This document shows, in pieces, positions 181 to 39,282 of a stretch of 64,000 bases of DNA (the stretch's first letter is position 1; every line of letters begins with the position of its first letter). Below the pieces are notes generated by a model. The model made no database searches. It saw nothing but the letters and a program-made list of their open reading frames with translations, and was not told the origin of the DNA. Where the stretch lies: positions 55,800,001-55,864,000 of the forward strand of contig OZ296655.1 in the NCBI GenBank assembly GCA_965655095.1, written 5' to 3'. The translations under genes were made by a program, and so were the position numbers. This DNA is from Haplodiscus bocki (taxonomy: Eukaryota).

Positions 181-2660
181 TTAATCCAAAAGACCGACGC
201 AAGTTTTCAAAAGGCAGGAAATGCAGTATTGGCGGAAGATGATCCTAACCATGTACTTACGTCAATACGTAAAACCTTGCCCCAGTAGCATACAGTTCCA
301 AAGCATTCACACTCTCACAAAAAAGGATGTCTATCTATGTCATGGAATTTTTAGCATATTGTCCGGCATTCAATAAATTTTGAACACAGTTTTTGGGGAA
401 AACCAAAATCAATCAACATTTAGACAGAGTAATTTGTTAACACGATTTTCCCCAAGCAAAAGGATTCCAACACGAGTATGGAACGCATGCGACATTGGTT
501 TACAATTCCATTTTACAATAGCACACAATCCTGGCAAAAAGAACACTGCTGCTGATTTTTATCATGTTTGGAGACCGACCCAAACAAACAGGTTATCCTT
601 AAAATCAGCGAAGACGTTCCTACACACCAATTGAAGTAAACTTTGACTTAACAGGATTAGCATACAAATACCAAGTCTGCTTTCACCCTGATGACGCTGA
701 ATTGCCAACTGAAAAGTGATGGCAACTCAAACAACAAAAACCAAATACACTACAGATGGAACCCCCCGTCAAAACCATGTCACACTACTGCAGACATGAC
801 AAGTACATAATCACCCTGATGCACTACATGGAATCATTCATCGAAGTCCCACCAATACTAATCGAACAAAACGCGGATCCGGTACTACTAAACTTCAAGA
901 GACAATTGCTTGGTTTAGCTTTCGACGAACAAACATTAGCAATAAATTCTAGATACACTCACCATTGCCGAAACAAAAAACGCATCATATTCAGAGATGA
1001 TATCTTAAACAGACAGAACTACACTGATTTCGGTGAGATTAGCGACCTATAAGTTTTACTACCAGTGAAACTAAGAAATACACTGCTCAACTCATTTTAT
1101 GGTGAAACAGGAAAACCCCCAGGTATCTCTAAAATGATGCAAGAAATAAGACAAAATTATTACTTCTTTTAAATTGCGAACGAAGTCCACAAATGGGGAA
1201 AAGAGTGTCAATCCTGCATCTAAGAAAAAAAGATTGACAACTCAAAAGTTACACCAGAACTCATCAGTATACCTGGATGCGGTTTAGGTCAGGAGACGCC
1301 ATGCAAATAGATTTGCTACCAGAACTCCAGCAAAGTGGAGGCTACAAATTTATCATCAACGCAATCGATGTAATTTCACGACACGCCTTCGCCAGCCCGG
1401 TATCCAATCCTACAGCGATGCTTAACACTCCAGAAGTTATCATCGATACCAAGACTAGACATGCTTACCTTCCTACATTAATGACAACTCACAAAGGCTC
1501 AATTTTTGTTTCAAATGTGATACAAGAAAAAGCTGAAATTCTAAGTATAACACTTTGCCATGCGACATCGAAGCATGCACAAACTATCGGAGCCTTAGAA
1601 AGAACGCCTGCCGCAATAAAAACATCAGTGAAACTGTCCTCAGGAGAAATTCGCAACCAATGGCACAAGTATTCACCAATAGCCATTGGAACTACAACAC
1701 AAAGTATGACACGAGTATCGGATGCAAATCTAGCCAAGTCTTTAACGGAAAAACCCATAAAACATACTCAATCACAAACTCGGGTTGAAACTCAAAACTG
1801 GTTTAGCCCCGAATACAGATTTTCAAAACGAACTACTGAGAAGAACACAAATTTTGTACAAAACCAACAAAAAAGTAATTCAGTCATACATCAGATACAA
1901 ATTTTGTAATGATAAAAAAACAAGAGCCTCGCCCAAGCGAGAGAAAATTTATCTCTACATCTTACAACTTGAAGCGGATCCCCAAGGATCAAAAATACCT
2001 TTTCTTGTTTTTAGATGGATTGTTTCATAAGTAGTAGAAAAAGTTTTGCCCAACAAAAACTGCATAGTCCGTTAAATCAGTACCAACAAAACCCAAATTT
2101 TACATCGTATTAGACCTCGCAATTGCACTTCAGACACATCCTTAGATGACAGCTACACTAATGAAAAATTCCCACCTGATGATAAAATTGTGTTTCCTCA
2201 GGATATTTTATACAGTATAGCGTGGGAGGCGAAATTTAATCCCTAATTTCTCAAAAATCACAAATTGTACCACGAGCTGAAAACGCACCAAAACGCAAAC
2301 AGTCGAGACTCTGCTACACATCAGAACGTTACAGGGAATTTGCCCGAAAGCACAAAAATGCAATAGACGCTACTACTGATGAACGGCATTCCGATACACA
2401 CTCAATTCAACATTACTTCAATGCTCCACAAAATGACACACACGTTCGTTTTAACGTTCCCCCCAATTGAAAATGTTGATACGTCAAAATCATGGCAAGA
2501 TTCATAAACAAGGCATGATACCGGTTCAACTGCATCTACGGACTTGAAAAAGTCCGTCTTCTGAAAAGACGAACCTACTCAAGATACAATTTTTTACGCG
2601 GAGGAAATTACAACCTACGACTTCACCCTAACCCAAACTTCTGACTCAAATAGATATTAG
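181..2660 (+). pseudogene. pol: Gypsy pol remnant (RNase H, integrase Zn-binding region and core), frameshifted
   Basis: QIDLLPEL..GGYKFIINAIDVISRHAFA, HATSKHAQTIGALERT and YNTKYDTSIGCK fragments in several frames with many stops. RNase H precedes integrase, the Gypsy order. Confidence 0.88.
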
Positions 2661-4330
2661 ACAGGTGCCAAAAAATGAATTACTGGAATGTCGCAGAGAG
2701 CCACTAATATTTTACTTTTTCCTATTTTTCTCTCTTTTTTTTCTTTTTCATCATTTATCCTTTTAACCACAATCGGGTAATAACAAATAATCAGAAACAA
2801 AAAGAACTGAAAAAAACTACACTTATAAATACAACATCAGCATCGAAAGAATTTCAATCTTCTTAAATACCGGCACCACCAAGATTCCTTAAGTTCTCTA
2901 TCAAGGAAGCAACAGATTCTGGCAATCAAACCCTGACGACATCGGTTATCGGGGCTAACCAGGTAAAGGACTTTGAACGCACATAGTAGCTGAGGAAGAA
3001 GTATCTAAACTTCCCCCATCCACAACTGCATCTGCACGAATCCCTTTATAGCACTTTTACGACTCTTTCAAAGTTTAGTCTTTATCCAAAAAATCCACAT
3101 ACGACCACAGATTGTAACCTGGCTCAACAGCGATCCCACCAAAAATATCGCATTCTGAAATAACAGATGGTAGAGAACTCTGAACTCGCCTAATTGCTTC
3201 CGATAAATCCGGCCCTTCTCCAGACCCACTTGCAGACCCAAATCTGACTTCCAGTAACTCCTATACAAGGTGCAGTAAACATAAACAGCTCAGGCGGAAC
3301 TTTAGCAAAACCTTCAGCTTATGACATAACTGAGGACAACCAGCTAAAAATGAAATAATGTCTCCAACTTCAGGCCCGAAGTTATCCTCATGCATGTAAG
3401 TTTAACGTACATCGTCAATGAAAAGCATGAACTCATCAACATGACTGTTCGAAGTTCTTCAGCAACCCACTCACGGACACAAAAATTGTGAACCAAAACA
3501 CCCTAGCTCTTCAGGGAGGCAGAAAACAATAGAGTAATTGAAGCAGCCCATGCCGTTTGAAAGATGTAACTTCCACGTACTATGGGCCAAGCGCCCATTG
3601 CGCACAAACTTCATAAGTTTGCGAGCCGACTCCAAAAATGGACTCAATGCCTCTTCCACAACAGCAGATGTCACAGCATGGTCACTAGCCTTCTTCTTTT
3701 ACGTCTTCTTCGCCATTTCGACAGTAACCTTTGCAACACGCAGAGCACAAAAGCTGAAATTGGGTCTTCCTCATAAAATCACCCAAACCAAACAATGTTA
3801 TGCCGGTGGAATCTACTTCGTGGATGGCTTCCCAATCTCCTTCCGATGGTAGATAAGCTTTCGTAAAAATCCTTGAAAGTAAACCATAAAAGAAGGAAGC
3901 CAACTCTCTGTTGAGTGAAAAACCTTCATTCTGTCTGTTGCGTCAACGCAAATTGGAACACTGCTGGAAGTCCTGCATGATGGCAGGGAACAACTTGAAT
4001 ATCGAAGGAGAATAGATATCGGCAGTCATATTTGAATTAATCACTTGAGTTTGAAATGAAAATTAAGCCAAAAAAACAAACAGTTGACACAAATTTTCCA
4101 ACATTGTTTTTCAAGCAACACTAACATGTCCTTTCACAATACTGAACTCCCTCTAACTGTCCACTTGCCTCAATAAAAATACAAACGTCAGCCACTTGAT
4201 GATATAGTTCTTGAACCACCAGATACAGTCTCAAGAAATCAGATCCTCAAGAGCCTACAAAAAAATTGAACCCACATATTATTTTGTCATTTTCACTACT
4301 GTTGCCAACATCATGACCTACTTCGCGCAA

Positions 4331-6340
4331 TTATTGAATAGGCTGCATCCACTTGATGTTCAGAGTATCAAGAAAGCGGGGCAGAAGGGACTTTAGAAGC
4401 GAAAACATATCGATACGCCCCATCACACTGTAGCTAGGCTTCCGCAACATTTTCTCCAAAATCAAACTCTTGAAGTCAAAAGGGTAACGCACACATACAT
4501 TACTGCTACGGGACAAAGCCAGAGCTTTTATCACGTCGACACCAACTCCTCCACAATTAACAATCTCGAGACTTTTGACACAAGTCCAAGAATTTGGGAG
4601 ATCCCTAACAATTGGTTTTTTACAACCGGGGCATCGCGATCACAAAGTAACACGTCAAGGTCCAACAATCTTCCTCCTTCCCAAAACTGAACACTCACTC
4701 TAGGGCACTCGACGCTAAATACAACTGACACGAACATTGACTACACCAGAACAGATTTCACATGCCACATCAGTCGGATCAAACAAAAATGAAGATTTCC
4801 CTGACCTAACAAAGCCAACTTCGTACTTCTATGTAAACAATACGAAAACACATAATGACTACAAACCTAATTATCCCAACTCGATGGCATAACCACGTCA
4901 ATATAAAAAACTGTGACTAGTGCAATCCAACTAACACTGACATTCTTGGCTCCAGTTAAAATTTGAAGTCGGACCAGAGTTTCCAGTTAAACTGCCCAGG
5001 TAATTCCACAAACCATCTAAGATCCACCGTTGCCCTCCACTCTTAAGAAATGTTGTCAACAACTGCAGCTAGAATCACACACAATCCTCCCTACCAGCAA
5101 ACATAAACGGTTTCCCTTCTACAACATCATAGTAAGAAGGCCTCTTATGATCCGTTTCGGGCACTTCACAGATCTTGTACGCTTCCCGTTCAGCAGCTAG
5201 ACACTCCCCATACAACAGACGGGCATCCATCCTTCTCACAGCCTCAAGGAAGTAGCGATCGCAGTAAGGCTGCTCTAGTCGCAAATGCCCTGCACTCTGA
5301 TAATGTCGTTTCATTTCAATTATCCCACGTGAAAGCATCAAAAAGATGACTCTGCAGATCATGCAGTAAATTTTGGTGATTTTTTAACGGATCTTCAGGT
5401 TCAGAATGAAAAAGTCTAGCCCATGGCAATCACTGTAACACCTCCTCAAAAAAACATCCATCCACCTTCATCTCGGTTACCGGGAGGAATTGCGTTTGGG
5501 CGACCTTCAAATGACTTGAATGGATCTACCTTCTTGGATTTTTTTTTCGTCTTCAACTTCCGCGTTAACACAGCCAAGTGCAAATCTTCTTCTTTTGACG
5601 CCATAATGACAGTTCCCATTGATTGCGTTCCTTGCGTCAAAAAAGCAATCGTTCACTGCTCAGTTCCACCCGGCCAAGCAGTATCCACACTCGCAGCTGT
5701 CGCCGTCAAACCAAACACAGTAGGTAGCAAATACTTTGGTTCGGACGCAAAACTGTCAGATCGCGTGGAAATATTTACGTTTGGTCCAATCTCTCCACGT
5801 CAACCCAAGCTGCCAACTCCACGAGCACAAAACAATAGGTCTTCCAAAAGCCCATAAGACGCCAGTGTGACTTCCAACCCCACTTTTCTAGCATTTTGAG
5901 TCATCTGATCAGCACTCAAACTAGTAGTGGTATCGCCTCGATCCAACACGGTCGGTGGGTTTAGCTGGAAAAAATTCTCTAACAAAGTTTTCGCAGACTC
6001 ACTAGGGTAAAACTTTGACTTTTGTGAAAATCTGTTTTTGTGCAATTAACTCTTCTCGCGGCGTCAATTCAATATTCACGTTCCTCCAAGAAAACCTAGA
6101 TGGTCCGGCTTGCTCCGCTGTGGTACCCCTCCCAATCATCGCATCAATCTCAGACAAGGCAATGTCAGTACTTCCTACTTCCACCGACGCCACGGTCATA
6201 CAACTGCTCCCCAGATAATGTCTATTGAAGTTTGCAGGTCGACCGGTGGCTACAGGGTCTACTTCGGATTTTTCCACAGCAAACACAACGTTTGAAGCAC
6301 GTTTAACGGGAGTTCCCACAGGTGACACTTTCAACGACAT
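4331..6340 (-). pseudogene. Fragmented antisense ORF of unknown function inside retrotransposon A
   Basis: Chain of abutting or overlapping minus-strand ORFs (6002-6340, 5800-6045, 5446-5640, 5075-5362, 4531-4737, 4331-4534) with protein-like composition, starting at ATG 6340. No family recognised. Confidence 0.5.
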
Positions 6341-20318: not shown

Positions 20319-20497
20319 TTAAAACATGCATCTGCAATAAGTAGTAATGGCGTCTCTGTGAGCTTCCACGTTGTGCACTCTCAGAATGTCAACTCCGAGA
20401 CTCGCAGCCGCTAAATGAACGCCCAAAGTTCCACCCACTCTTTCTCTAACATTTTTTCTTCCTGTCAAATCTCCCACCATTCTTTTGTTGCTGGCGC
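20319..20497 (-). CDS. folP: DHPS exon 5 (GASNKRMVGDLTG...GVDILRVHNVEAHRDAITTYCRCMF*), not in the ORF track
   Basis: S-x-K and RVH motifs; TAG| acceptor; TAA stop at 20321-20319. Confidence 0.92.
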
Positions 20498-23400
20498 CTA
20501 CAATAATTGGATGTTAACAAGTGAATTTTAAGAAAAATAATATCTCTTTCGTTGTGCAAAAATTTCCATCAATGTTGTTCCAAATCAAGTTCGCCAACTT
20601 CCTTCTTTGTTACTTTCAGTCATTCAGGGGGCAAGACACGTGAGATCAGTATTTTTTTTCCAATTTTCACAATTTTTCGCAATCAATTTGAGAAAAAAAA
20701 ACTCGCAAAAGTGAAACCGTAATCCAAACCCAAAATATTAACCACATTTTGACATAACTTTTCAAAAACTACTTTGGGTCTCAATTTTCAAGCTTTAAAA
20801 AATCCTCTTGTACCAAAAATTGAATTTGATCAATAATGCTTCCTTAAATTGCCAACAAACACTACCTATGAGCACACAGAGGCCCATTTTCTTCAACAAA
20901 GGAATGGATTTGATTAACTGCAAATCATGTTCCAAAGTCTTCCCGAATCCTATCCCGGGGTCAATGCATAAATTAGCAGGACTTCCTCCCAACTCATAGT
21001 ACCTCCTGGTCAGTGATTAAATCGGTTTATAATTAAAAAAAAATTCGAAACATTTACAAATGATTTCGCTGACCCCATGAGCCAAAGAAAGCATGTTGGC
21101 GGTAAAATCATTTTGATGCAACGACAATAAACTGATACCAAAACTTCCTTTGCAACGAAAAAATATGTCCCTAATTGATAGATACGATCAAATAAAACAG
21201 TGCAAGAGTTATTTCAAGTTGTTGACTTTTCGACAATATTTATTCCTCTGTTCCAAAAATTTGAACAACTTTTGATAAAAATGACATCCAAAACCATTAT
21301 CATATTTGTTGTTTTACGTTCAAAAACTTAGTGAACAAATAACATAATTGCAGCAAAAATCCAATTAGTTTTTGCTTTCTCATCTACAATTCACCCGCCG
21401 CAGTTTGATAAGACTGTGTTCACAGTTGTTGCCAAAGGTGAGCCATTTTTAGAGTTCGAAAAATTTTATGCCTACCGATTTTTTTGGTTACCTTGTAGAT
21501 AGCCCAGTAACAACCATCATTTGAACAAGTCATTCGATTTACACTGCAATAACGCCAAAAAAAGCATGAATTGATAAAACACAGCTGGTTAAGATCTACG
21601 AGTGCACTCTTCAAGTCATTACAGCAATAATCCAAAAATGATTGTAAATAATGCATCCGCGATCAACGGCAGTGCATTACTGGCTCGATGCAAGTAAAGG
21701 CAGTTTTTAACTTATATATAATATTTTTCCAGTAAAACGCCGTTAAGGCCGCTATTCTTCCGGGGAATAACCACTTCTCTGGTTAATTTTGACCGCCGTT
21801 ATCGACCTTATACCACAGAAGTTTCGGCCGATATTTCGACCTTATACCACAGAAGTTTCGGCCGATATTTCGACCTGGGAAACAGTCAATATAAAAATAA
21901 GGGAGCTCTAGATGCCATCAAACAACGTGGCATCAACTTGGCGTGCACAGTGCGTGATCATACAAAACCAAGCATTATTTAGGATTTACAGGAAACATTT
22001 CAAATCTAGGTTTAACTTTCTTAGAGAAAAATCAATTCTAACTCCCCCGACAGTAGCAGCGAGAATTACAACGCACTATGTATGCGTGGACTCTTCTATG
22101 ATTGGTTGAAAATCACTCACGTGTACCATAAACTTTGACGTTGCTTATTTATTAACGTATGCAATTTCGCTAGGGGTTCGAATCAGTTAGAAGAGGGGAG
22201 CTAACAGAAAAGATCCGCACTTTAGTTTTCAAATCATGGCTGGGAACTGTGTTACTTAGTTATTTGCAACTGTCAATAAGTTAGCAAATGTTGAAAGATA
22301 TTTTTTATCGGCTTTTTTTCGTCTGAAATTCCTGGTAGGATTAACAGATTTTTCTGGTGCAGCACATGTTGCTTTTAATATTCTCTCGGTTAACACCAGA
22401 AGTCACAAAAACATTTCAGTTCGTGCTTTTGTGATTAGGAATACGAAGTTTAACGAAAAAAATTATGCCCGTATTTAAGTAAAAAAACTCGATACTTATA
22501 CTTAAATTCACTGCCAGTTGGTTTCAAATTCACCTTTTTCGAAACCTGCAAGAAAAGATGGCGCATAAACGGGGTGAATGTATTGGAATTTGATCAACTC
22601 AGTCTTTTTATAGTGTATGGAAATTGCCATTCTCCCCATTAGATTTAGAAAACCTTGAGATGCAAGCATCTGTGCAGTCAATTATTGAGCACATCACAGA
22701 TGAGAAAACCAACCACTTTTCAGATCTCAAAAACTGAAAAATCCAGAAAGAGTCAATAGTACAAAAAGAGGTAATTTTGAGTCGAAAACGAGAGTTAGAA
22801 ATGCGGTCAAAGCTCTTTTGAAATTCAATTGCGTCCCCATATTGATATACCACAGGGAAATGACTGTGGAAGTGAACGTTGACAATGCAATTTATAGAAA
22901 TCTTGAAGGACTTGACTATAATGGATCTCGCATTTACGACAACTACCAAGGTTCAACACACTCCTTTGTGGCATCTCGAACCTACAACAAAGATGGCAGT
23001 GCGATATACTCAAACCTAGCTGTGTTTATGCATCACGTGTCATGTGCTTTTGCAATAATCTTTCATGTTAACTTTTGTAGTAGGATGAGATAATTTCCAA
23101 GTTATTTGACAGCAATGATTTGTTCCAAAGTTTGTCTGAATTTTGGTAAGGTTTGATTTATTTTTCAAGTCATTCCAAAGAATCGAGTAAAATCTTCATA
23201 TAGTGGTGAGCGAAAAAAATGTCGCTTTTACAAAAAGGGTTATTGTGAATCTTTGAACCGACGAATGTTCTTGATATTCACACAATATATAGACATGGAA
23301 CTTCTCTTTCAAAACATGTAACATTTATTCTCTCGTGTGTAGCTGCTGAGAAGCAGAACACGTAAAGTTTGTTCACGATTTCGTGAAAACATGCAGAAGC

Positions 23401-25976
23401 AGCGAGTTATTCTTGAATTATGCTTCAATGAGTTAACTCATGATCGGAACACCTTACGAAACTTATCAAGTATGGCCCCAAGAACATTTCAGCGAAACAT
23501 GAAAAAGCTCGAAAACGGAGAAAGACTGGGACGGAAGGTTTGGAGAAAAAAAGAATTTTCAATGCGACATTTTTTTCGCTCACCACTATAGAACAACATG
23601 AGGAATCCTATATAAAATGGAGATAGTGAACCGTGTCTCGGCTTTTCAAAACTATCAGAATTATTCTGATGTGATTCCGAAAGACCGAAGCCAGCAAGTG
23701 GAAATAGGGAGCCAATAAACAGTGAGCAAACAAGATTCAGTGATAGAGTTTCCGTTATGGCGTCATGATGATCATGCCGAATGAAGAAAGCTGGCGCATG
23801 CTCATCAAGTCGTCCGCTATATTCACGCACCTGCTTTTTCATTCAGCGTGATATTAGTGACTTCGAAGCCAAAAAAACGGACGGTCTTTAAAATGTGTTG
23901 GACAGATTGAAAATTTAATACACCGATCTGGCAGAAGGTTTGCTAGTTACGAAAATGCGTGGAAAAGTTGCAAATCATAGTGAGTGCCCAAAAAACACCC
24001 GCAGAACAAGCTTTGAGCTAAAAAAAACTTTCGGAACGATTGAATCACTGTTCCTAGCTTTGTTCTCAAGGTAAGTGTAAACTTCGTTCACTACATCTTC
24101 ATACTTCGGATCGTTTTGCATAGTCAAGCTTGGGGCCAATCGATGCATGAGCACTAAAGGAATATTATAAGTGGCCGAAAACTCGATAGTAGCTCCATTT
24201 GAATCTTCGCCGGCTGATACGTCGTTTATGATGTTGGCACCGGAGAGAACAGCTTGTTTTGCCACTGATAATTTGGTTGTATCAATACTGATGGTAACTG
24301 TTTGGCCTTTCATCGGCGTTGTACGGTTGGGTTTACACAAACGCTTATTTGGTTTATTTAAGAAAAAGTTACTTTTCACTGAAAAACAGTTCCAATTTAA
24401 CTGACAGAAAAAAGTTAGGATTTTTTGTGTTTTTCAACTTCAATGATTTTTATTCAAAAATAGGTTGACTCCTAAAATAGTTCAAAATTATGAGACCCGA
24501 TTTTAAACATTGCACGAGACGAAAAAGTTATGGTCTCTTTATTTTATGCGACTATCATAATTCATCCATTCATGCTACTTTTTCAAATCTTGGAACATTA
24601 TTGAGTTTAGAAAATTTTTGCCCCATTCACAAAACCAAATCAATGCTAGAGGCTCTCCCTAACAGAGATTTATAAATTAATTGTGAATCCATGAAAATTT
24701 TCGAAGATCCTTCCATGTACAACACCACCTTTCGTATCTCTTCGAATTCCTTCAATCACAGGAATAACTCGGTCCAATTCCACAGTTTCTGATACAGGCA
24801 CACTTCCTATACATACCGATCAGTTTTTTAATCGCTCAAAATTCAAAGTATTAAAAGTTGAAATTCCTTGTAACGATCACGACTTGTTAATTACTGCGCA
24901 GAAGAAAGTACATTCCACTCATAGATTTAACAGACGCCGTATTTTTTGACAACTCCGTGATTTTTTAGGTTCACGATGGAAATTTCGAAGTAAGTCAGAA
25001 CTCCTTCGCAGTTTCAATCTTTTAATCCAGTAGATGAAACATATTCGGCAGTAAAAACAATTTGATTCATTTGGTCTAAAAATTACAAGGGTTGTCAGTG
25101 CAGCGATATTTGATCTAAATAAAGTAAAAAAAAACACAACGCAATTTTACCACACGACAGGCCGTACTTTCCTAAAAAGCAGCAAAATTCTATACGGTTA
25201 GTCAGCGCGTGGAAACAAGCCCGCCTATAGCGGTGACATTTCGTTTTTTTTTCAACCCGTGCGAACTGCCATTTTCCTACAACCTTTTAGCATGTCAAAT
25301 TTTGTTGGAAATCAGAATATCTTGAACGACAAAAGCGTGCCCGAAGTAATTCTAACGTGCGACAAAATTTTTTTCTATCTCCTCGACCTAAAACTGCACT
25401 GAGAAATCAAAACAGTTAAAAAAATTTCGAGACGCGCGGGCCCGGCTGACTTAGGCTGTTCCCGGCTTGTAGTCTTTTGAAAAGTAGAGCACCTGAGAGC
25501 TAGGTGAACTTTGAAATGCTCGTCAAAAATATTGATACTCGCATCAAAAAAAGCCGTCAATCAGAGGCATTGGCTCAACCTTGGCGAGGAAAGAAGTGCA
25601 ACTTTCATTCTCATATTTGACAAATCCAATACAATTCTTCCCGCAAAAAGCAGTCCTCTGTACTGGTTTTTTCAATCAAACTGAAAAAAAATCAGACATA
25701 AATCGAGCAATCCTTCAAGTAATTCAGAAAATACCCTTTTTCCATCTTCCGGAGATGTATGAGCGATTAAGCTGGTGTTCCTGGTCTAGAAGACTCTCCA
25801 CCAATATCTAAGATGTCAGCTCCAGCGGAAACGGCCTCCAATGCCTGTTTGAATGATCTCTCAGTATTGTGATTGGGGTCTCCGTCGTAGAAAGAGTCAG
25901 GGGTGCAGTTGACTACGGCCATCAAAAGAGGACACCCCCCTCGTTTCAATTTCGAACGCACGAACGAAGCAAACAT
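20319..25976 (-). CDS. folP: Dihydropteroate synthase, stand-alone, 5 exons: complement(join(20319..20497,20866..21005,24054..24297,24729..24806,25781..25976)), 837 nt, 278 aa
   Basis: The spliced product has the DHPS motifs in order with no stops: MAVVNCTPDSFYDG, GADILDIGGESSRPG, VSETVELDRVIPVIEGI, ISIDT, GANIINDVSAG, VLMH, YEDVVNEV, IDPGIGFGKT, VLIGASNKR, ILRVHNV. Exon phases are consistent (1,1,2,1). The start ATG is the first in-frame Met; an extra upstream exon cannot be excluded. Confidence 0.93.
20498..20865 (-). other. DHPS intron 4, 368 nt, GT-AG, weaker terminal arms
   Basis: GTAGTGTT-TGTTGGCAA ... TTGTTAACA-TCCAATTATTGTAG. 9 bp with two G-U pairs (20849-20857 and 20512-20520). Confidence 0.88.
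20866..21005 (-). CDS. folP: DHPS exon 4 (RYYELGGSPANLCIDPGIGFGKT...CVLI)
   Basis: DPGIGFGK motif; bounded by CAG| and TAG|GT. Confidence 0.93.
21802..21876. repeat. Tandem duplication, 34-bp period (2.2 copies), in DHPS intron 3
   Basis: tcgaccttataccacagaagtttcggccgatatt twice, then tcgacct. Confidence 0.95.
23199..23800 (+). mobile_element. Tc1/mariner-like DNA transposon remnant in DHPS intron 3
   Basis: TA|TAGTGGTG start resembles a TA|CAGTG TIR. ORF 23391-23591 resembles the N-terminal paired-like HTH (..RTFQRNMKKLENGERLGRK). No intact DDE domain. Confidence 0.4.
24054..24297 (-). CDS. folP: DHPS exon 3 (VTISIDTTK...INDVSAG...VLMH...YEDVVNEVYTYLENKAR)
   Basis: Pterin-binding Asp, Asn and Met motifs; bounded by CAG| and TAG|GA. 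Confidence 0.93.
24298..24728 (-). other. DHPS intron 2, 431 nt, GT-AG, terminal complementary arms
   Basis: GT-GGTGTTGTAC ... GTACAACGCC-GATGAAAGGCCAAACAG. 10 bp with one G-U pair (24717-24726 and 24315-24324). Confidence 0.88.
24729..24806 (-). CDS. folP: DHPS exon 2 (GSVPVSETVELDRVIPVIEGIRRDTK), not in the ORF track
   Basis: Matches the DHPS 'VSxEEELxRVIPV' helix; bounded by TAG| and AAG|GT. Confidence 0.92.
24807..25780 (-). other. DHPS intron 1, 974 nt, non-canonical GA-AG, terminal complementary arms
   Basis: GAACACCAGC-TTAATCGCTCA ... TGAGCGATTAA-AAAACTGATCGGTATGTATAG. The 11-bp arms are a perfect match (25760-25770 and 24828-24838). Confidence 0.82.
25781..25976 (-). CDS. folP: DHPS exon 1 (MFASFVRS...NCTPDSFYDG...DIGGESSRP)
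   Basis: Loop-1 and loop-2 DHPS motifs; ends CCAG|GAACAC. Confidence 0.92.
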
Positions 25977-29130: not shown

Positions 29131-29559
29131 AACAGAAAGCGGAATTGAGTCAACACCGTCGACGAAAAAAACTAACAAGAAAATTGATGCTACAGATTTC
29201 AAAAAAATGAAGGAATTAGCTAAATTTGCTCTTTATTGGGTAATGATGTATCGAAGTGTTATGGTTCATTGTCTACATTCAAAGAAGGAGAAGTATTGAC
29301 ATTAGGTCTCACTGCACAGAGAATTCACTGATGCACTGTAACTAACTTCAAGAAGCACATTTAGATGAAGTACCGTTCCAACGGATTTTATTTAAGAGAG
29401 ATAACACTATTGTATAGGGATAGCTGACACTAAATATACAATAAAGTGTGAACGATTCATGAATCAAGCATAAACGACTTCATCAATGTATTACAAAGAA
29501 ATTGGGTTATTTGAAGCGGAAATCACGCCAAGTAATGGCTAGATGTACAGGGACAACAA

Positions 29560-31720
29560 TAGACTCACTTACAAGGAAACTTTTTAGTCTACTTTTGAAT
29601 ACCTGAAGACTTACACTTATATCTCGCAAACTCAAAGGCAGTGAGTTCCACTTCAAGAAAATGTGGTGAAAGAAAGATTTGGAGCAAGATGAAACAGATG
29701 GTACCTTCCCTCAAAGAATTATTTGATTGGAACGGTTATTCACCTGAAAATTTGCGATGGGTAACTTTATTGTCCACAAATGCTTCTTTTTCTATTGTTG
29801 ACATACAGGTAAAAACAGGTCAATGACTTCAGATCATTACGTTGCCGAATGCCGAGTACACTTTTGTGTATTCTCAAATCAAATGAACAAGTAAACCCTT
29901 GATGATGGAACGAAAATAAACAGACTTTAAAGCCCAATTCACCTGTTTCTCTAACGATAGTAATAACGTTAGGGTAATTTGCAGCAGCAATCAAGCAGAA
30001 TACTGGGAAGCACTCAAAAAGAGCCTGGAAAAGCATGAGGAGAACTGTTCTTAGAAACTTATGTTCTATACTTTCGATGGTTTTGATACCCACAGCCATT
30101 TTCTTCAATACCTTTTTGTTTTCAGTCTGGAAATCGAGGTGCTTATCAATTCTTACATGTATAAACTTACACTGATTCGATTTTTCAATTCTAGATGAGC
30201 CTACTACAATTGTGCCTGAGTTCTGCAGACGTTTATCTTACGAGAAAAAGTGATGAATTATGTTTCACTATCGTTCAAGATCAACCGCTTAAAAAAGAAG
30301 TAATTTTCTAATTTTACTACATTTTCCTGTCAGCGGTTAAGTGAAATCTCCGATTCACTATCGCTGCAATAGAGCAAGCAATCATCAGCAGACTGTATTA
30401 TATGAGCATTTTCTCTAATTTGATCCGAGAGGTCATTTACATATAAGTTGAACAGCAGGGATCCCAGCACAGTTCCTTCAGGAACACTTTCTTTCAGTTT
30501 AATCCAATCGGAGACTATTTTATTTACTGTAACTTTCTGTAATCTCTTCGTTAAGAAACTCTCAATGCATTCAATAGCCGAATGAGAAAAACTCAGTGAT
30601 TTCAATTTTTTCAGAAAGATTCCATGCGATAATGAGTCAAAAGCTTCAGATAAATCCAAAAATACTGCATGAACCACATTGCCATTTTCTATTGAATCAG
30701 ACCAATTATCAGCAGATGCGTTTTGACAGTACTTTTTAAAGGCGAGTTGGCGTTTAGCGAGCAAATTTTTGCAGTCATGACCGAACCAGGATTCTTTCAA
30801 AAGTTTCGGAATTTTCTTCGTTAGGAATACCTTTTCGAGGGGAGCATGCTTTTCCGCAGCACTAGACAACAAATTGACAAACATGTCAAACTTATCACTG
30901 GGAGTTGAACACTGATATACTTTAAACCATGGGAGACCTGACAATGTTTTGCAAAAAGCGATTTTGTCAAATTTTTTCAGGTCAAAACAGTGAATTATGA
31001 TGCGACTTAGTTTTCCAACAGTAATATCTGTAAAAAGAGCACAACCTAAGTGACCGGTTTTGAAAGGACTATCAAAAACAAAGCTTTTCTCGTCCGGTAT
31101 ACGTTCCGTTAGAATATAAACAAAGTGTGTTTTCGTAGTTTCACAAATGTGTGTTAGAAAAATTGGACCAGCTACTGAAAAACCGTAGGGCAAATTCGCA
31201 GTTTCTAGATTTTCCCGTTCCAGCGTTGTAAAGAAATCCAAATTGTAGTCACCCATCGTGGTGATCGGAAGCGGTTCGCAAGTAGCGTTATCAAAATTAC
31301 GCGACAATTGTTCGAGGGAGTCAATTTGGTTAGCTTTCAGAAGATTATAGGTTACATCCAGAAGCATTTTTGACTCACAAATATTAGAAAAGTTACAGCG
31401 GCATTCAACCCATGAAGATTCGAATTTAGATTTATCAAAAATATTCAAATCTTCACGTTCTTTCGGTGCTAGTCTTAAAGGCACAAAGAGCATTACACCG
31501 CAACCCTTCTTTATTTCATTGTTTTGATTTCTAACACATATAAATAGTTCATTGTGGAAAAAGCGACGTTCCATTAAGATAAATCATCATCAGGCGTGAG
31601 CCAGATTCCAGAGATACCAACTATAGCATTTTCGCCCACGTCGCTAACAAAAGATTTCAACGGCATCCGTTTGTTTGTTACACCTTGAAGTTCATGTGAA
31701 TGAAGGGCAGTGTCTATTTG
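29560..31720 (-). pseudogene. LINE ORF2 (APE endonuclease + reverse transcriptase), with internal deletion and stops
   Basis: GISGIWL, KKGCGVML and MGDYNLD (APE); VFLDLSEAFD, VPEGTVLGSLLFNLYVNDL and SADD (from YADD). The sequence jumps from the linker straight to RT domain 3. Confidence 0.9.
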
Positions 31721-31861
31721 TAATTCACAGACAACTGGGAAAAACTTTCAAGACTAATTTCAGGACAAGGATTTTGTACAATGCCACCGCACTTTTTCAC
31801 GAATAACGAAGCACAGAGGAAAAAACAAAGTGTTTAAAATCTTGTCAGATATTCCAAGGTT

Positions 31862-32574
31862 TCAAAACGAATACTTTTTCAAACTATTGCAGGCATTAGC
31901 GAGTAGCTCATTATCACACTTTTGTAGCTTATAAAGATTATCAAATACCAGCTTTTGGTTATCTAGCATGAATATAAAAATTTTCCCATTTGCAGTTACA
32001 ACACTGCGAACATCATCTTTACTTCTCAGGTCAAGGCTCATTTTTGCACGTAAAGGCGTCAAGTCATCATTTACATAGATACTGGTTTCTTTCAGATTCC
32101 TCCTGTGCTTCATAAATTGGTGCTTAGTATCCCACCTGACAAACTTAGCAATTAGAGGTTTTTGGCCCTTACCTCCGCCAGGTAGGCGGTGACAGGCACT
32201 AACATCACGAGCAAAGATTGTGACGCCAGCTTTTTCAGCCACACTAACCACCTTGGCGAAGACGTCTTCATCCGGCTCCTCCTCTACACCAAAGATGCGC
32301 ACGTTCTCCCTTCGCCCGCACTGCTCAATGCTGTCGGCCTCTATGATTAGGGACCGGTCATCCACAGTAGAAGCTCTCATCTGCAGCTCCTCAACAGCGC
32401 AAATGCCGCAAAGGAAAAGTTTTTGGGAATGAGCGTAGACACCCAAACGTTTGTCCAGATGATGCAGCCATTCCTGTCCATTCCAGGTCCAGTGCACTCC
32501 ACGAGATGGTTGCTGCCGTCGTCCTTCTTTGCTGGGTTTGGCGCAGATGCTGAGTTGTTGCGCGTCGGCGCCAT
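31862..32574 (-). pseudogene. LINE ORF1p (coiled coil + RRM-like + C-terminal domain), frameshifted near the N-terminus
   Basis: EQCGRRENVRIFGVEE, ACHRL, PLIAKFV and IYVNDDLT motifs typical of the L1-type ORF1 of CR1/L2/Jockey-group LINEs. Confidence 0.85.
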
Positions 32575-33799
32575 CAGTTATTCTATAGTAAATCTTTTTA
32601 ATAAGTTTATCACGACAATCTCAATTTATGAAATTTTTGAAATTGAAATATTCCACGAAATGCATGAATAAATCTTGCCCCTTCCTGATTTTAAGGCATG
32701 CCTGGAACTTCAAAACTTCCTTGCAGATTAAATTGAATTCACCTAGTCTGGAGCGTCATGAGAAATAATAAAAGAATAAATGAAGAAATTTTAGGAAAAA
32801 ATTGGGACAAAATCGGATTGCAACATCAAGCTAATAAAACAAAAAGAAAGGCTATTAGGCAAGAGAGGAATGAAGAGAGCCCGCTGAAAGCGCCGGTGCA
32901 ACAACATCTCTGGCCGCTCTTGCATGGAAGTTTTACATGTTTTTGTAAGTTGCCTGATATGACTTTTTACAAGTTTTAACATGAAGCATGGAAAATTTTA
33001 TATTGCATGAAATTGTGACTGCTGGCGGGACTTGTTACTAAACTTTTCCATACAATATACAAAATCTGAATGCAGCAGACATATTTCAATTTATACAAAA
33101 TTTTCCATTCAGTATTAAAGATTTTCCACGCACATTTCCAAATAATACGCGCCGTTCAAAATTTGTCATCGCGGTAATTTACTCATTTCGCTGTTTTTTT
33201 ATTAAGACCCCTGAAAGATTTCATGAGCAACAGAGGTTTATCATTAAGTAAAAATAGGACGTTTCAGCAATCTGTGAGCAATTTTCGATCGAAAAACAAA
33301 AATTTCAGAAAAAAACTGAATCAAAATGTTGGAGGCTTAAAACTGGTTTTATCTAATTGAGTCCGGACACCATAATTAAACTTTCATCCAGGTCAAGTCG
33401 ATAGTTTGTTCTCACTGACTTTCTTTCTGGAGAGGTGACAAATACTTTGCTGAGGTGAAGTAGAGTATTTAAAAAATGGGAAAGTATTTTTCGATACGTT
33501 TTGTGAGCTTTTTGCATTGCAATTTCGTGAAATTTTTGCAAGTTTTAAAAAATTTTGCATGATTTTTCCATGGAAGATCCCTAAATTGTCGATGTTTTAC
33601 AAGAAATATCCCTGCATGCATTATTACAACAAGCAAAATTTTCATGCGAGTCCGACTTGGGATACCATTCTATTATGCAAAAAATTTTTTACACCAGCTG
33701 TCCATCAGTTTGTTAGAAAAAGCTAAATTAAGATATGTACCTGTCACAGGGTCTCACACTCGAAAAGGAGATATGTCAGTCATATTTTTTCAAAAGACT

Positions 33800-37650: not shown

Positions 37651-39282
37651 CTAACTCTCCAAGTCGATCTGGAATTCTACCACTAGTAAATTTTTGTAAT
37701 CGAACAGAAACAAACTTTTTTCACTGTTCCATTTAATATTATCAACCGCAATGAGACCATGGTGCGTGTAGTTGATGTTAAGGCGTAAGTTCTTGCCCGG
37801 GCAAAATACAGTGACATTTTTAAATGAATCAATAACAGCATAATGATTGATGGAACATCTAAAAAGCACTGGTTTTTCATCCAATAACAATGTATCACTC
37901 GGCGTAGACTTGGGGTAGAACTCAATTAGTTTACGATCAACGTTCCAACTTGCACAAGAAAATGATTCATCGTCCCAAAAAATTAGGTCCAAAGGGACGG
38001 TGCTTTTGTCTTGAAGGAACTCATATTCGATAATCTGCGTCTCCAGATTATAAATAAAAACATTGTTGCTTTTGTTGCACATTGCCAACCAGTTACTCCA
38101 AATAAAAACCGATTCCACCTCACAATCGCGGAGGTCAAATGTTTCTAAACTCCACCTTAGCGGGTGGGCTGGATCACCAATTTTCACATCGAGAACACAA
38201 AAATTGACCACTCCATCAGACTTAACAACTCCAAAAACATCATTACTTGAATCAAAATTTCTCGAAATTTCACTTGTCGCCGTCACCTTCATGTCATTAC
38301 CATTCAATATCTGATGACTTCTTTCAGTAACTTTTGTCCACATTTTGACAACTTTCGGAGTCATCTTGATTAATTCAGGTACTTCGATTGAACTTACAGC
38401 GTTTTCAATTGCAGCTTCAAACAGCACGTCTAAATCTTTGGTCCATTTTAAACACACGTGTTGTTCCAGTTGCTTTCGCTGATCTGTGATAGAATTCCTC
38501 AGAAGTTTTTCAATTTCTAGATACTTGGAAGTTAAATTTCCTTCACAAAGAGTCAAAACATCTTTCAAATTAAAGAAACTACATTCTGCACGTGCAGTTA
38601 CTTCTTTCAACACTTCTCTATCTTTTTCCGAGACCGCGCCACTTTCGCTTTCTGTTGACAAAAACTTTTCCTGGTTCAAGCCATACCATTTTTTGGGCTT
38701 TGAAGCGATCACTCGGTCAAGCGTATCTCGGATTACTTTTACGAATTCGGTTTGATCTGACGGCACAGTTTGACAGATTGCATCGAAAGATCATTCCACA
38801 ATGTCTTCGAGATGCTTGATAGGTTTAGAAAGCTCCTCAAAATCAGAGATAAAAGCAAAGACTGTTTTCCGAACCTCACATGCTTTTGCAGAAACAGATT
38901 TGAAGTCATGTTTTGTATGACACTCTGTACACTGAGAACAAAACAGCACTTTCCAGTCTTCACAAAAATATTGGAGAAGATTTACATGCTTGTCACATAC
39001 TGCAGGCGAAAAACCCCTATGATCTATGACATCATGCTTTTGTCTTAGATGAAGAGCGACGATACAAATGCTGCAGAAGAATTTTTCTGCACTGGAAAGT
39101 TCACCACAACTGTTATAGCAAGTTCTGCAACGAAATGCTATGTTTAGATCCAAACATTGCGAACAGCTGTGACACAAACATTCCTTTCCATCTTCAATTT
39201 CAGGATCCATCTTCAAAACTGGATCCATTAGTTTGTTTTGTTTAGCTGCGACAGGGCATTCAATTTTTTCTATTACCGACAT
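37651..39282 (-). pseudogene. Intronless double B-box / coiled-coil / beta-propeller-like (RING-less TRIM-like) gene, 543 codons with one in-frame TGA at 38791-38793
   Basis: CHSC..FRCRTC..FFCSICIVALH..H (B-box-1-like) and VCDKH..YFCED..LFCSQCTECH (B-box 2), then a helical region and a beta-rich C-terminus. ORFs 38791-39282 and 37651-38766 are in the same frame. Confidence 0.75.

Follow-up and report, generated by a model that had tools for sequence, protein, structure and literature searches.

Probable horizontal acquisition of a bacterial dihydropteroate synthase gene, now bearing four introns, by the invertebrate Haplodiscus bocki

Dihydropteroate synthase (DHPS), the product of bacterial folP, is a textbook drug target missing from animals, which gives the sulfonamides their selectivity. 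An earlier note on DNA of Haplodiscus bocki, made from the letters alone, described an intact DHPS gene with introns in what appeared to be an animal genome, raising the question of how such a gene came there and whether it is still in use. The stretch analysed (the window) comprises 64,000 nucleotides (nt) of contig OZ296655.1, assembly GCA_965655095.1; in our numbering it is C8:55,800,001-55,864,000, part of a chromosome-scale contig in a 1.5-Gb assembly. The answer that we favour, at a probability of about 0.6, is that a bacterial folP was acquired horizontally and integrated, has host-like G+C content (GC), bears introns and is still under constraint.

The gene lies on the minus strand and has five exons. 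Exon 1 (25976-25781) starts with the ATG at 25976, encodes residues 1-65 and base 1 of codon 66, and includes N23, F29 and the GGESSRPG loop. Exon 2 (24806-24729; 78 nt) is SVPVSETVELDRVIPVIEGIRRDTK, and exon 3 (24306-24054; 253 nt) holds D100, N119, M145 and a clade-specific GEDSNG insert. The DPGIGFGK motif (D191, G195, F196, K198) lies in exon 4 (21005-20866; 140 nt), while S225, K227, R262 and H264 lie in exon 5 (20497-20319; 179 nt), which ends with the stop codon TAA at 20321-20319. Joined, the exons give a frame of 846 nt encoding 281 amino acids (aa) plus TAA, and in the window allele no stop or frameshift breaks it. The intact spliced frame that the earlier note had described is thus real and covers a full domain; the start and stop given there were exact, and the length of 278 aa was 3 short.

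Domain searches agree on the family. Pfam Pterin_bind (PF00809) gives separate matches to exons 1, 3 and 4. A hidden Markov model (HMM) built from relatives places exons 1-5 in order at positions 9-69, 68-92, 91-176, 177-224 and 218-276, so that together they span positions 9-276, a full-length Pterin_bind TIM barrel; over the whole window it matches nothing besides these five exons. Exons 1, 3, 4 and 5 each match the NCBIfam DHPS equivalog TIGR01496 best, over model positions 2-49, 77-155, 162-202 and 204-255 and with 57.8, 68.4, 33.8 and 45.6 bits; these come from exons scored singly, and their rough sum is 205.6 for a whole-protein cut-off of 162.6.

The catalytic residues are also in place. 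In an alignment with Escherichia coli FolP (L019:4064-4912, minus strand), all the pterin-site residues listed in the earlier note (N22, D96, N115, M139, D185, K221, R255 and H257) are identical, as are F28, R63, P64, G189, F190 and S219. The pocket for para-aminobenzoic acid (pABA) and the mobile loops are kept in the animal protein (F29, S63-R64-P65, G195-F196, S225, K227). At the position of E. coli R220 the animal protein has N, and the nearest bacterial clade has M. With the models for Sul2, Sul3 and Sul4 the exons reach 16-32 bits each, in every case less than with the DHPS model and nowhere near the cut-offs of 475-600. Membership of the sulfonamide-resistant Sul1-4 group takes a best match at those cut-offs, and by its sequence the protein is not a member.

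Could the gene belong to a bacterium in the sample, brought into the assembly by contamination or misassembly? In favour are the bacterial type of the protein and the occurrence of bacterial genomes of the related clade in the same series of ENA samples. Against this, the gene has four introns of 0.4-3 kb with host repeats, sits 55.8 Mb into contig C8 and has a best bacterial match just 47% identical. The sequencing runs listed are four DNA-like ones of a single study. Read depth over unique parts is ~25-45 in exons, introns and flanks alike, and similar to that of the host. A second contig from this sample, L008, runs collinear with the locus for more than 17 kb, the B-box gene upstream included, and differs by 2-4%. 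Since all 35 of the listed read variants equal the L008 letters, at ~40% of depth, L008 is the other haplotype of the sequenced animal, and the gene is present on both with conserved flanks. It is the single DHPS locus in the assembly (C8:55.82 Mb), the other Pterin_bind match being an ordinary methionine synthase. Its coding sequence (CDS) has 44.9% GC, and 43.6% at third codon positions (GC3), close to the 44.8 and 45.0% of the host MetH-like CDS; the comparison with the host rests on two host coding sequences measured. Bacterial relatives of the gene have 28-40% GC and 15-39% GC3. The gene thus lies physically inside a host chromosome, as a bacteria-to-animal transfer should. Contamination, which the earlier note had already argued against, can be given practically no credence; it is as good as refuted by the chromosome-scale contig, the depth, the two haplotypes and the GC3.

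The window contains two further elements. One, at 37651-39282 on the minus strand, is a B-box zinc-finger gene with open reading frames (ORFs) 163 and 371 aa long; it is located ~12 kb upstream of the DHPS gene, and its position is conserved on the second haplotype (L008:1-1456). A segment of 3.4 kb at 29329-32731, with a reverse-transcriptase ORF (30330-31574) and an ORF of 211 aa (31862-32497), is absent from L008 and looks like a polymorphic retroelement insertion.

The nature of the host was read from the mitochondrial contig C6626 (19.7 kb, L062 + L063; 29% GC). It has in-frame TGA (Trp) codons in COX1 and AGR codons at conserved COX1 serines (e.g. IFSLHL), and in its mitochondrial mode ARAGORN places tRNAs for ~20 amino acids in tight clusters. 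Because TGA is Trp, AGR is Ser and there are some 20 kinds of tRNA, the host is a bilaterian invertebrate and not a cnidarian or a tunicate, so that the animal identity earlier guessed from transposon and gene content holds. The same contig carries a ~2.3-kb unit repeated ~2.7 times (75-2373, 2373-4687, 4665-6289), which may be a true duplication or may have arisen in assembly.

Where did the gene come from? With exon 3 as query against 1.84 billion representatives, the best non-self matches are proteins of 280-300 aa at ~50% identity; at full length the best relatives are stand-alone FolP, 41-47% identical. The contexts of those inspected are plainly bacterial, with rpoB-rpoC ahead of the gene, flagellin and ligA next to it, or folP, cdaA and ybbR in a row; one is on a circular contig of 1.69 Mb. 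The donor's relatives may be associates of marine animals. The circular contig is ENA ERZ26859052 (L051; 1,685,129 bp), with a sample accession close in series to the host's ERZ26859043.

In a maximum-likelihood (ML) tree of 72 rows (LG+C20+F+G4) the animal protein groups with 12 bacterial FolP, the clade having 100 ultrafast bootstrap (UFBoot) and 97 SH-aLRT support. This clade is sister to Bacteroidota FolP (99/95), and the fungal FolB-HPPK-DHPS proteins, the only eukaryotes in the tree, form a separate clade elsewhere (100/100). A first quick tree of 93 rows was suboptimal (a constrained search gained 23.6 log-likelihood units, lnL) and was replaced by this one. SFYDG, GESSRPG, the one-residue GE(D/E)SN insert and AS(N/M)K are common to the animal protein and that bacterial clade only. 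Clade and signatures together bear out the bacterial origin that the earlier note had proposed. Wider searches return a mixed picture: a GTDB peptide-pattern scan gives 35-46% matches in scattered phyla, a protein atlas search gives mixed phyla, and a scan of 301 Bacteroidota genomes with the bacterial protein P0288 peaks at 49% identity.

Descent through eukaryotes is the alternative to be weighed here: the gene would be a vertically inherited remnant of an opisthokont FolB-HPPK-DHPS fusion, or a transfer from another eukaryote. The approximately unbiased (AU) test does not reject a grouping of the animal protein with the fungal clade (delta lnL 26.9, p 0.19, with fungi as the only eukaryotes sampled). 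Yet the ML tree places the protein inside the bacterial clade and away from fungi; the fungal insertions and the SFSDG and STRP motifs are absent from it; and among its PDB matches stand-alone bacterial DHPS rank first, while a bifunctional eukaryotic enzyme comes much further down. Neither window nor genome yielded a remnant of HPPK or FolB, and folP was missing in the Metazoa included in a published survey of eukaryotic folB, folK and folP (PMC4224340). A eukaryotic source is, in our judgement, very improbable. The phylogeny of bacterial and eukaryotic DHPS that the earlier note had proposed favours the bacterial clade, while the AU test is not decisive on the separation from fungi.

Orthologs in other animals were not found with exon 3 against the 1.84 billion representatives, with the ORF against 5.8 billion proteins, with a profile of the exon pieces and relatives, or among JGI metagenome contigs; the sole such match in these searches was the second haplotype (P0165/L008). 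A full-text literature search gave no report of an animal-encoded folP. One sea-anemone transcriptome paper has a folP label in a pathway figure, and its text gives no species for folP.

What would DHPS do in this genome? HPPK has no genome match with PF01288 or TIGR01498, and FolB and the chorismate-binding domain of pABA synthase were likewise not found in genome searches, which ran exon by exon and could miss small exons. Within the window a purpose-built HMM finds no HPPK exon (best E 0.5). The lack of an HPPK exon upstream, reported in the earlier note, therefore holds for window and genome alike. The folC family has a single locus, C1:61,567,862-61,569,707 (L064), with two exons, and reads like an ordinary animal FPGS. 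The suggestion of partial or complete folate synthesis by the host finds no support in these results. With no match for HPPK, FolB or pABA synthase, a de novo pathway run by the host on its own is not supported, and for a host in which these cannot be detected the pterin diphosphate would have to be supplied by microbes or the diet. That the enzyme complements a symbiont, also proposed before, is pure conjecture. The assembly also holds a complete, intronless, B12-dependent methionine synthase of 1262 aa with five domains (G000:C9:13356080-13359868; L059:6081-9869, minus strand). An intronless MetH of that size is unusual for an animal gene, and with the two-exon FPGS it hints that conserved genes of this lineage are intron-poor.

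The introns are the most unusual part of the gene. Intron 1 (24807-25780; 974 nt) has the ends GA..AG (CCAG|GAACAC...TATAG|GAAG), as has intron 3 (21006-24053; 3048 nt; GCTAG|GAACAG...GACCAG|GAGG). Intron 2 (24307-24728; 422 nt) and intron 4 (20498-20865; 368 nt) are GT..AG. All four lie at AG|G, as befits the gain of introns after transfer that the earlier note had envisaged, and have direct repeats of 4-6 nt around them (AGGAA, GAAAGG, AGGA and TAGG for introns 1 to 4). Inverted matches of 10-14 nt occur at or near the ends of introns 1, 2 and 3, the clearest case being the 14-nt imperfect inverted CAGTGATT(C/A)AATCG of intron 3; intron 4 has a weak internal one alone.

At introns 1 and 3 the frame cannot be kept with any GT or GC donor, and GA..AG alone gives a gapless protein. 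These cuts restore RPG|SVPVSE at intron 1 and NKAR|RYYELGG at intron 3, without gaps relative to the nearest bacterial proteins. Canonical splicing was considered for both: intron 1 offers no in-frame option, and the GT..AG option for intron 3 was rejected, as it deletes five residues conserved with the relatives. Both haplotypes have the GA donors, and short-read contigs cover the two donor sites without difference. From the protein that results, exact removal of the two GA..AG introns is predicted.

At blastn sensitivity the intron ends are found nowhere else in the genome, so a transposon origin of the introns is a lead and not a result. An introner or transposon family is accordingly not demonstrated for them; copies were found for the internal nested repeats alone. 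The decayed transposons said to surround the gene are present as repeats within intron 3, which holds one young element and old repeats, but introns 1 and 2 occur essentially once in the genome. The young one is a miniature inverted-repeat transposable element (MITE) at 23199-23590, 392 nt long with 35-nt terminal inverted repeats and many genome-wide copies at 98-100% identity (40 scored of 2884 candidates). Since the second haplotype does not have it, the element must have inserted very recently and is polymorphic; in longer copies at other sites the same ends enclose ~900 nt. At G000:C8:56454119-56455586, some 630 kb away from the gene, lies a stretch with three segments 68-77% identical to the inner part of intron 3, probably another old copy of the decayed repeat there.

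Is the reading frame still under selection? The haplotypes differ by 2.0% in exons and 4.1% in non-coding DNA (3.0-3.9% within introns). The CDS has 6 non-synonymous and 10 synonymous changes, giving a non-synonymous rate (dN) of 0.009, a synonymous rate (dS) of 0.054 and a dN/dS of 0.17 (binomial p 0.0008; a small sample of 16 changes and two haplotypes). There are thus fewer amino-acid than silent changes; dS is close to the intron divergence, and one indel falls in the CDS versus ~30 in introns and nearby flanks. Small as the sample is, it indicates purifying selection, which had earlier been argued from the intact frame and now has direct support. Both haplotypes carry all four introns; since constraint acted while they did so, the GA..AG introns are probably spliced, and this is the main argument that they are.

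Several observations weigh against our reading, the first four of which speak for a dead or dying relic, that is, a folP constrained until recently and now not properly expressed, or a polymorphic pseudogene drifting to loss. Two of the four introns need non-canonical GA donors, which are very rare in animals; the one native host intron checked, in FPGS, is canonical (GTAAG..CAG), and the GA-bounded insertions are perhaps not spliced. Exon 1 of L008 has an apparent 1-nt deletion in codon 32 (window 25883) that, if real, leads to a stop at codon 56; the choice is between a slip of the assembly and a null allele that segregates, and exact cluster look-ups gave singletons only. As an orphan, the DHPS has no pathway partners and no obvious substrate source in the genome. 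Neither AATAAA nor ATTAAA occurs within 620 nt after its stop. To these we add the size of the selection test, the AU result and the want of an ortholog from another animal in the searches made. The relic nevertheless has to account for four introns common to two haplotypes that have since diverged by 3-4%, and for a CDS that over the same time kept its low dN/dS and took up a single indel. It has also to account for the unbroken frame and full set of catalytic residues of the window allele. We regard it as rather unlikely, although it deserves to be taken seriously.

Under horizontal acquisition with continued constraint, a bilaterian invertebrate would have taken a stand-alone bacterial folP into its germ line. 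The gene would have resided there long enough to reach the GC of the two measured host coding sequences and for four introns to arise at AG|G, and would still be kept as a domesticated gene that codes for protein. The 281-aa enzyme, as predicted, carries what is required for coupling 6-hydroxymethyl-dihydropterin diphosphate with pABA or pABA-glutamate; transcription of the gene and activity of the enzyme are predicted from sequence. A further proposal, which we consider doubtful, is that the animal runs the DHPS step of an otherwise bacterial folate pathway, as a mosaic, or supplies the enzyme to a symbiont lacking folP. The animal enzyme would then be a sulfonamide target, and among the post-transfer introns two would be spliced as GA..AG by the major spliceosome.

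If the enzyme is active, this animal is an exception to the rule that animals lack DHPS, and a natural system for a lone pathway step kept through a pathway shared with microbes or some other source of substrate. It would, moreover, give a clear-cut example of introns, two of them GA-AG, arising in a gene that was intronless on arrival. If the gene is not expressed, it is an unusually well-preserved relic of a transfer.

Among known systems the protein most resembles bacterial stand-alone FolP (EC 2.5.1.15; TIGR01496/PF00809), with which it agrees in length, in the absence of fused domains and in its catalytic residues. The clade-specific motifs and one-residue insert are shared with the AT-rich bacterial FolP clade of P0004, P0287, P0290, P0002, P0005, P0288 and P0009. 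Unlike these, it is encoded on the chromosome of an animal, with four introns and host-like GC, and is 41-47% identical to its relatives, whose neighbours cdaA and ybbR it lacks. With the HPPK-DHPS and FolB-HPPK-DHPS fusions (fungal FOL1, plant mitochondrial HPPK-DHPS) it has in common the catalytic domain, a nuclear gene and introns. It differs from them in having no HPPK or FolB domain and no fungal insertions, and falls in a separate ML clade, for which the AU test is not decisive.

Introners (transposon-born introns) and permissive G*-AG splicing have been described in larvacean tunicates. The DHPS introns are similar in lying at AG|G with 4-6 nt direct repeats, short inverted ends and two GA donors. 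Unlike introners, their ends have no further genomic copies at the sensitivity used, and no transposon family is demonstrated. The host, moreover, is no tunicate, its mitochondrial AGR being Ser and not Gly.

A parallel for the presence of such a gene is Branchiostoma, which has a prokaryote-derived folB-folK without folP (Maguire et al. 2014, PMC4224340). In each case a lone bacterial-derived piece of the pterin branch stands among normal animal genes. Branchiostoma holds the two steps before DHPS and no folP, whereas this genome holds folP without detectable folB or folK, and is its mirror image.

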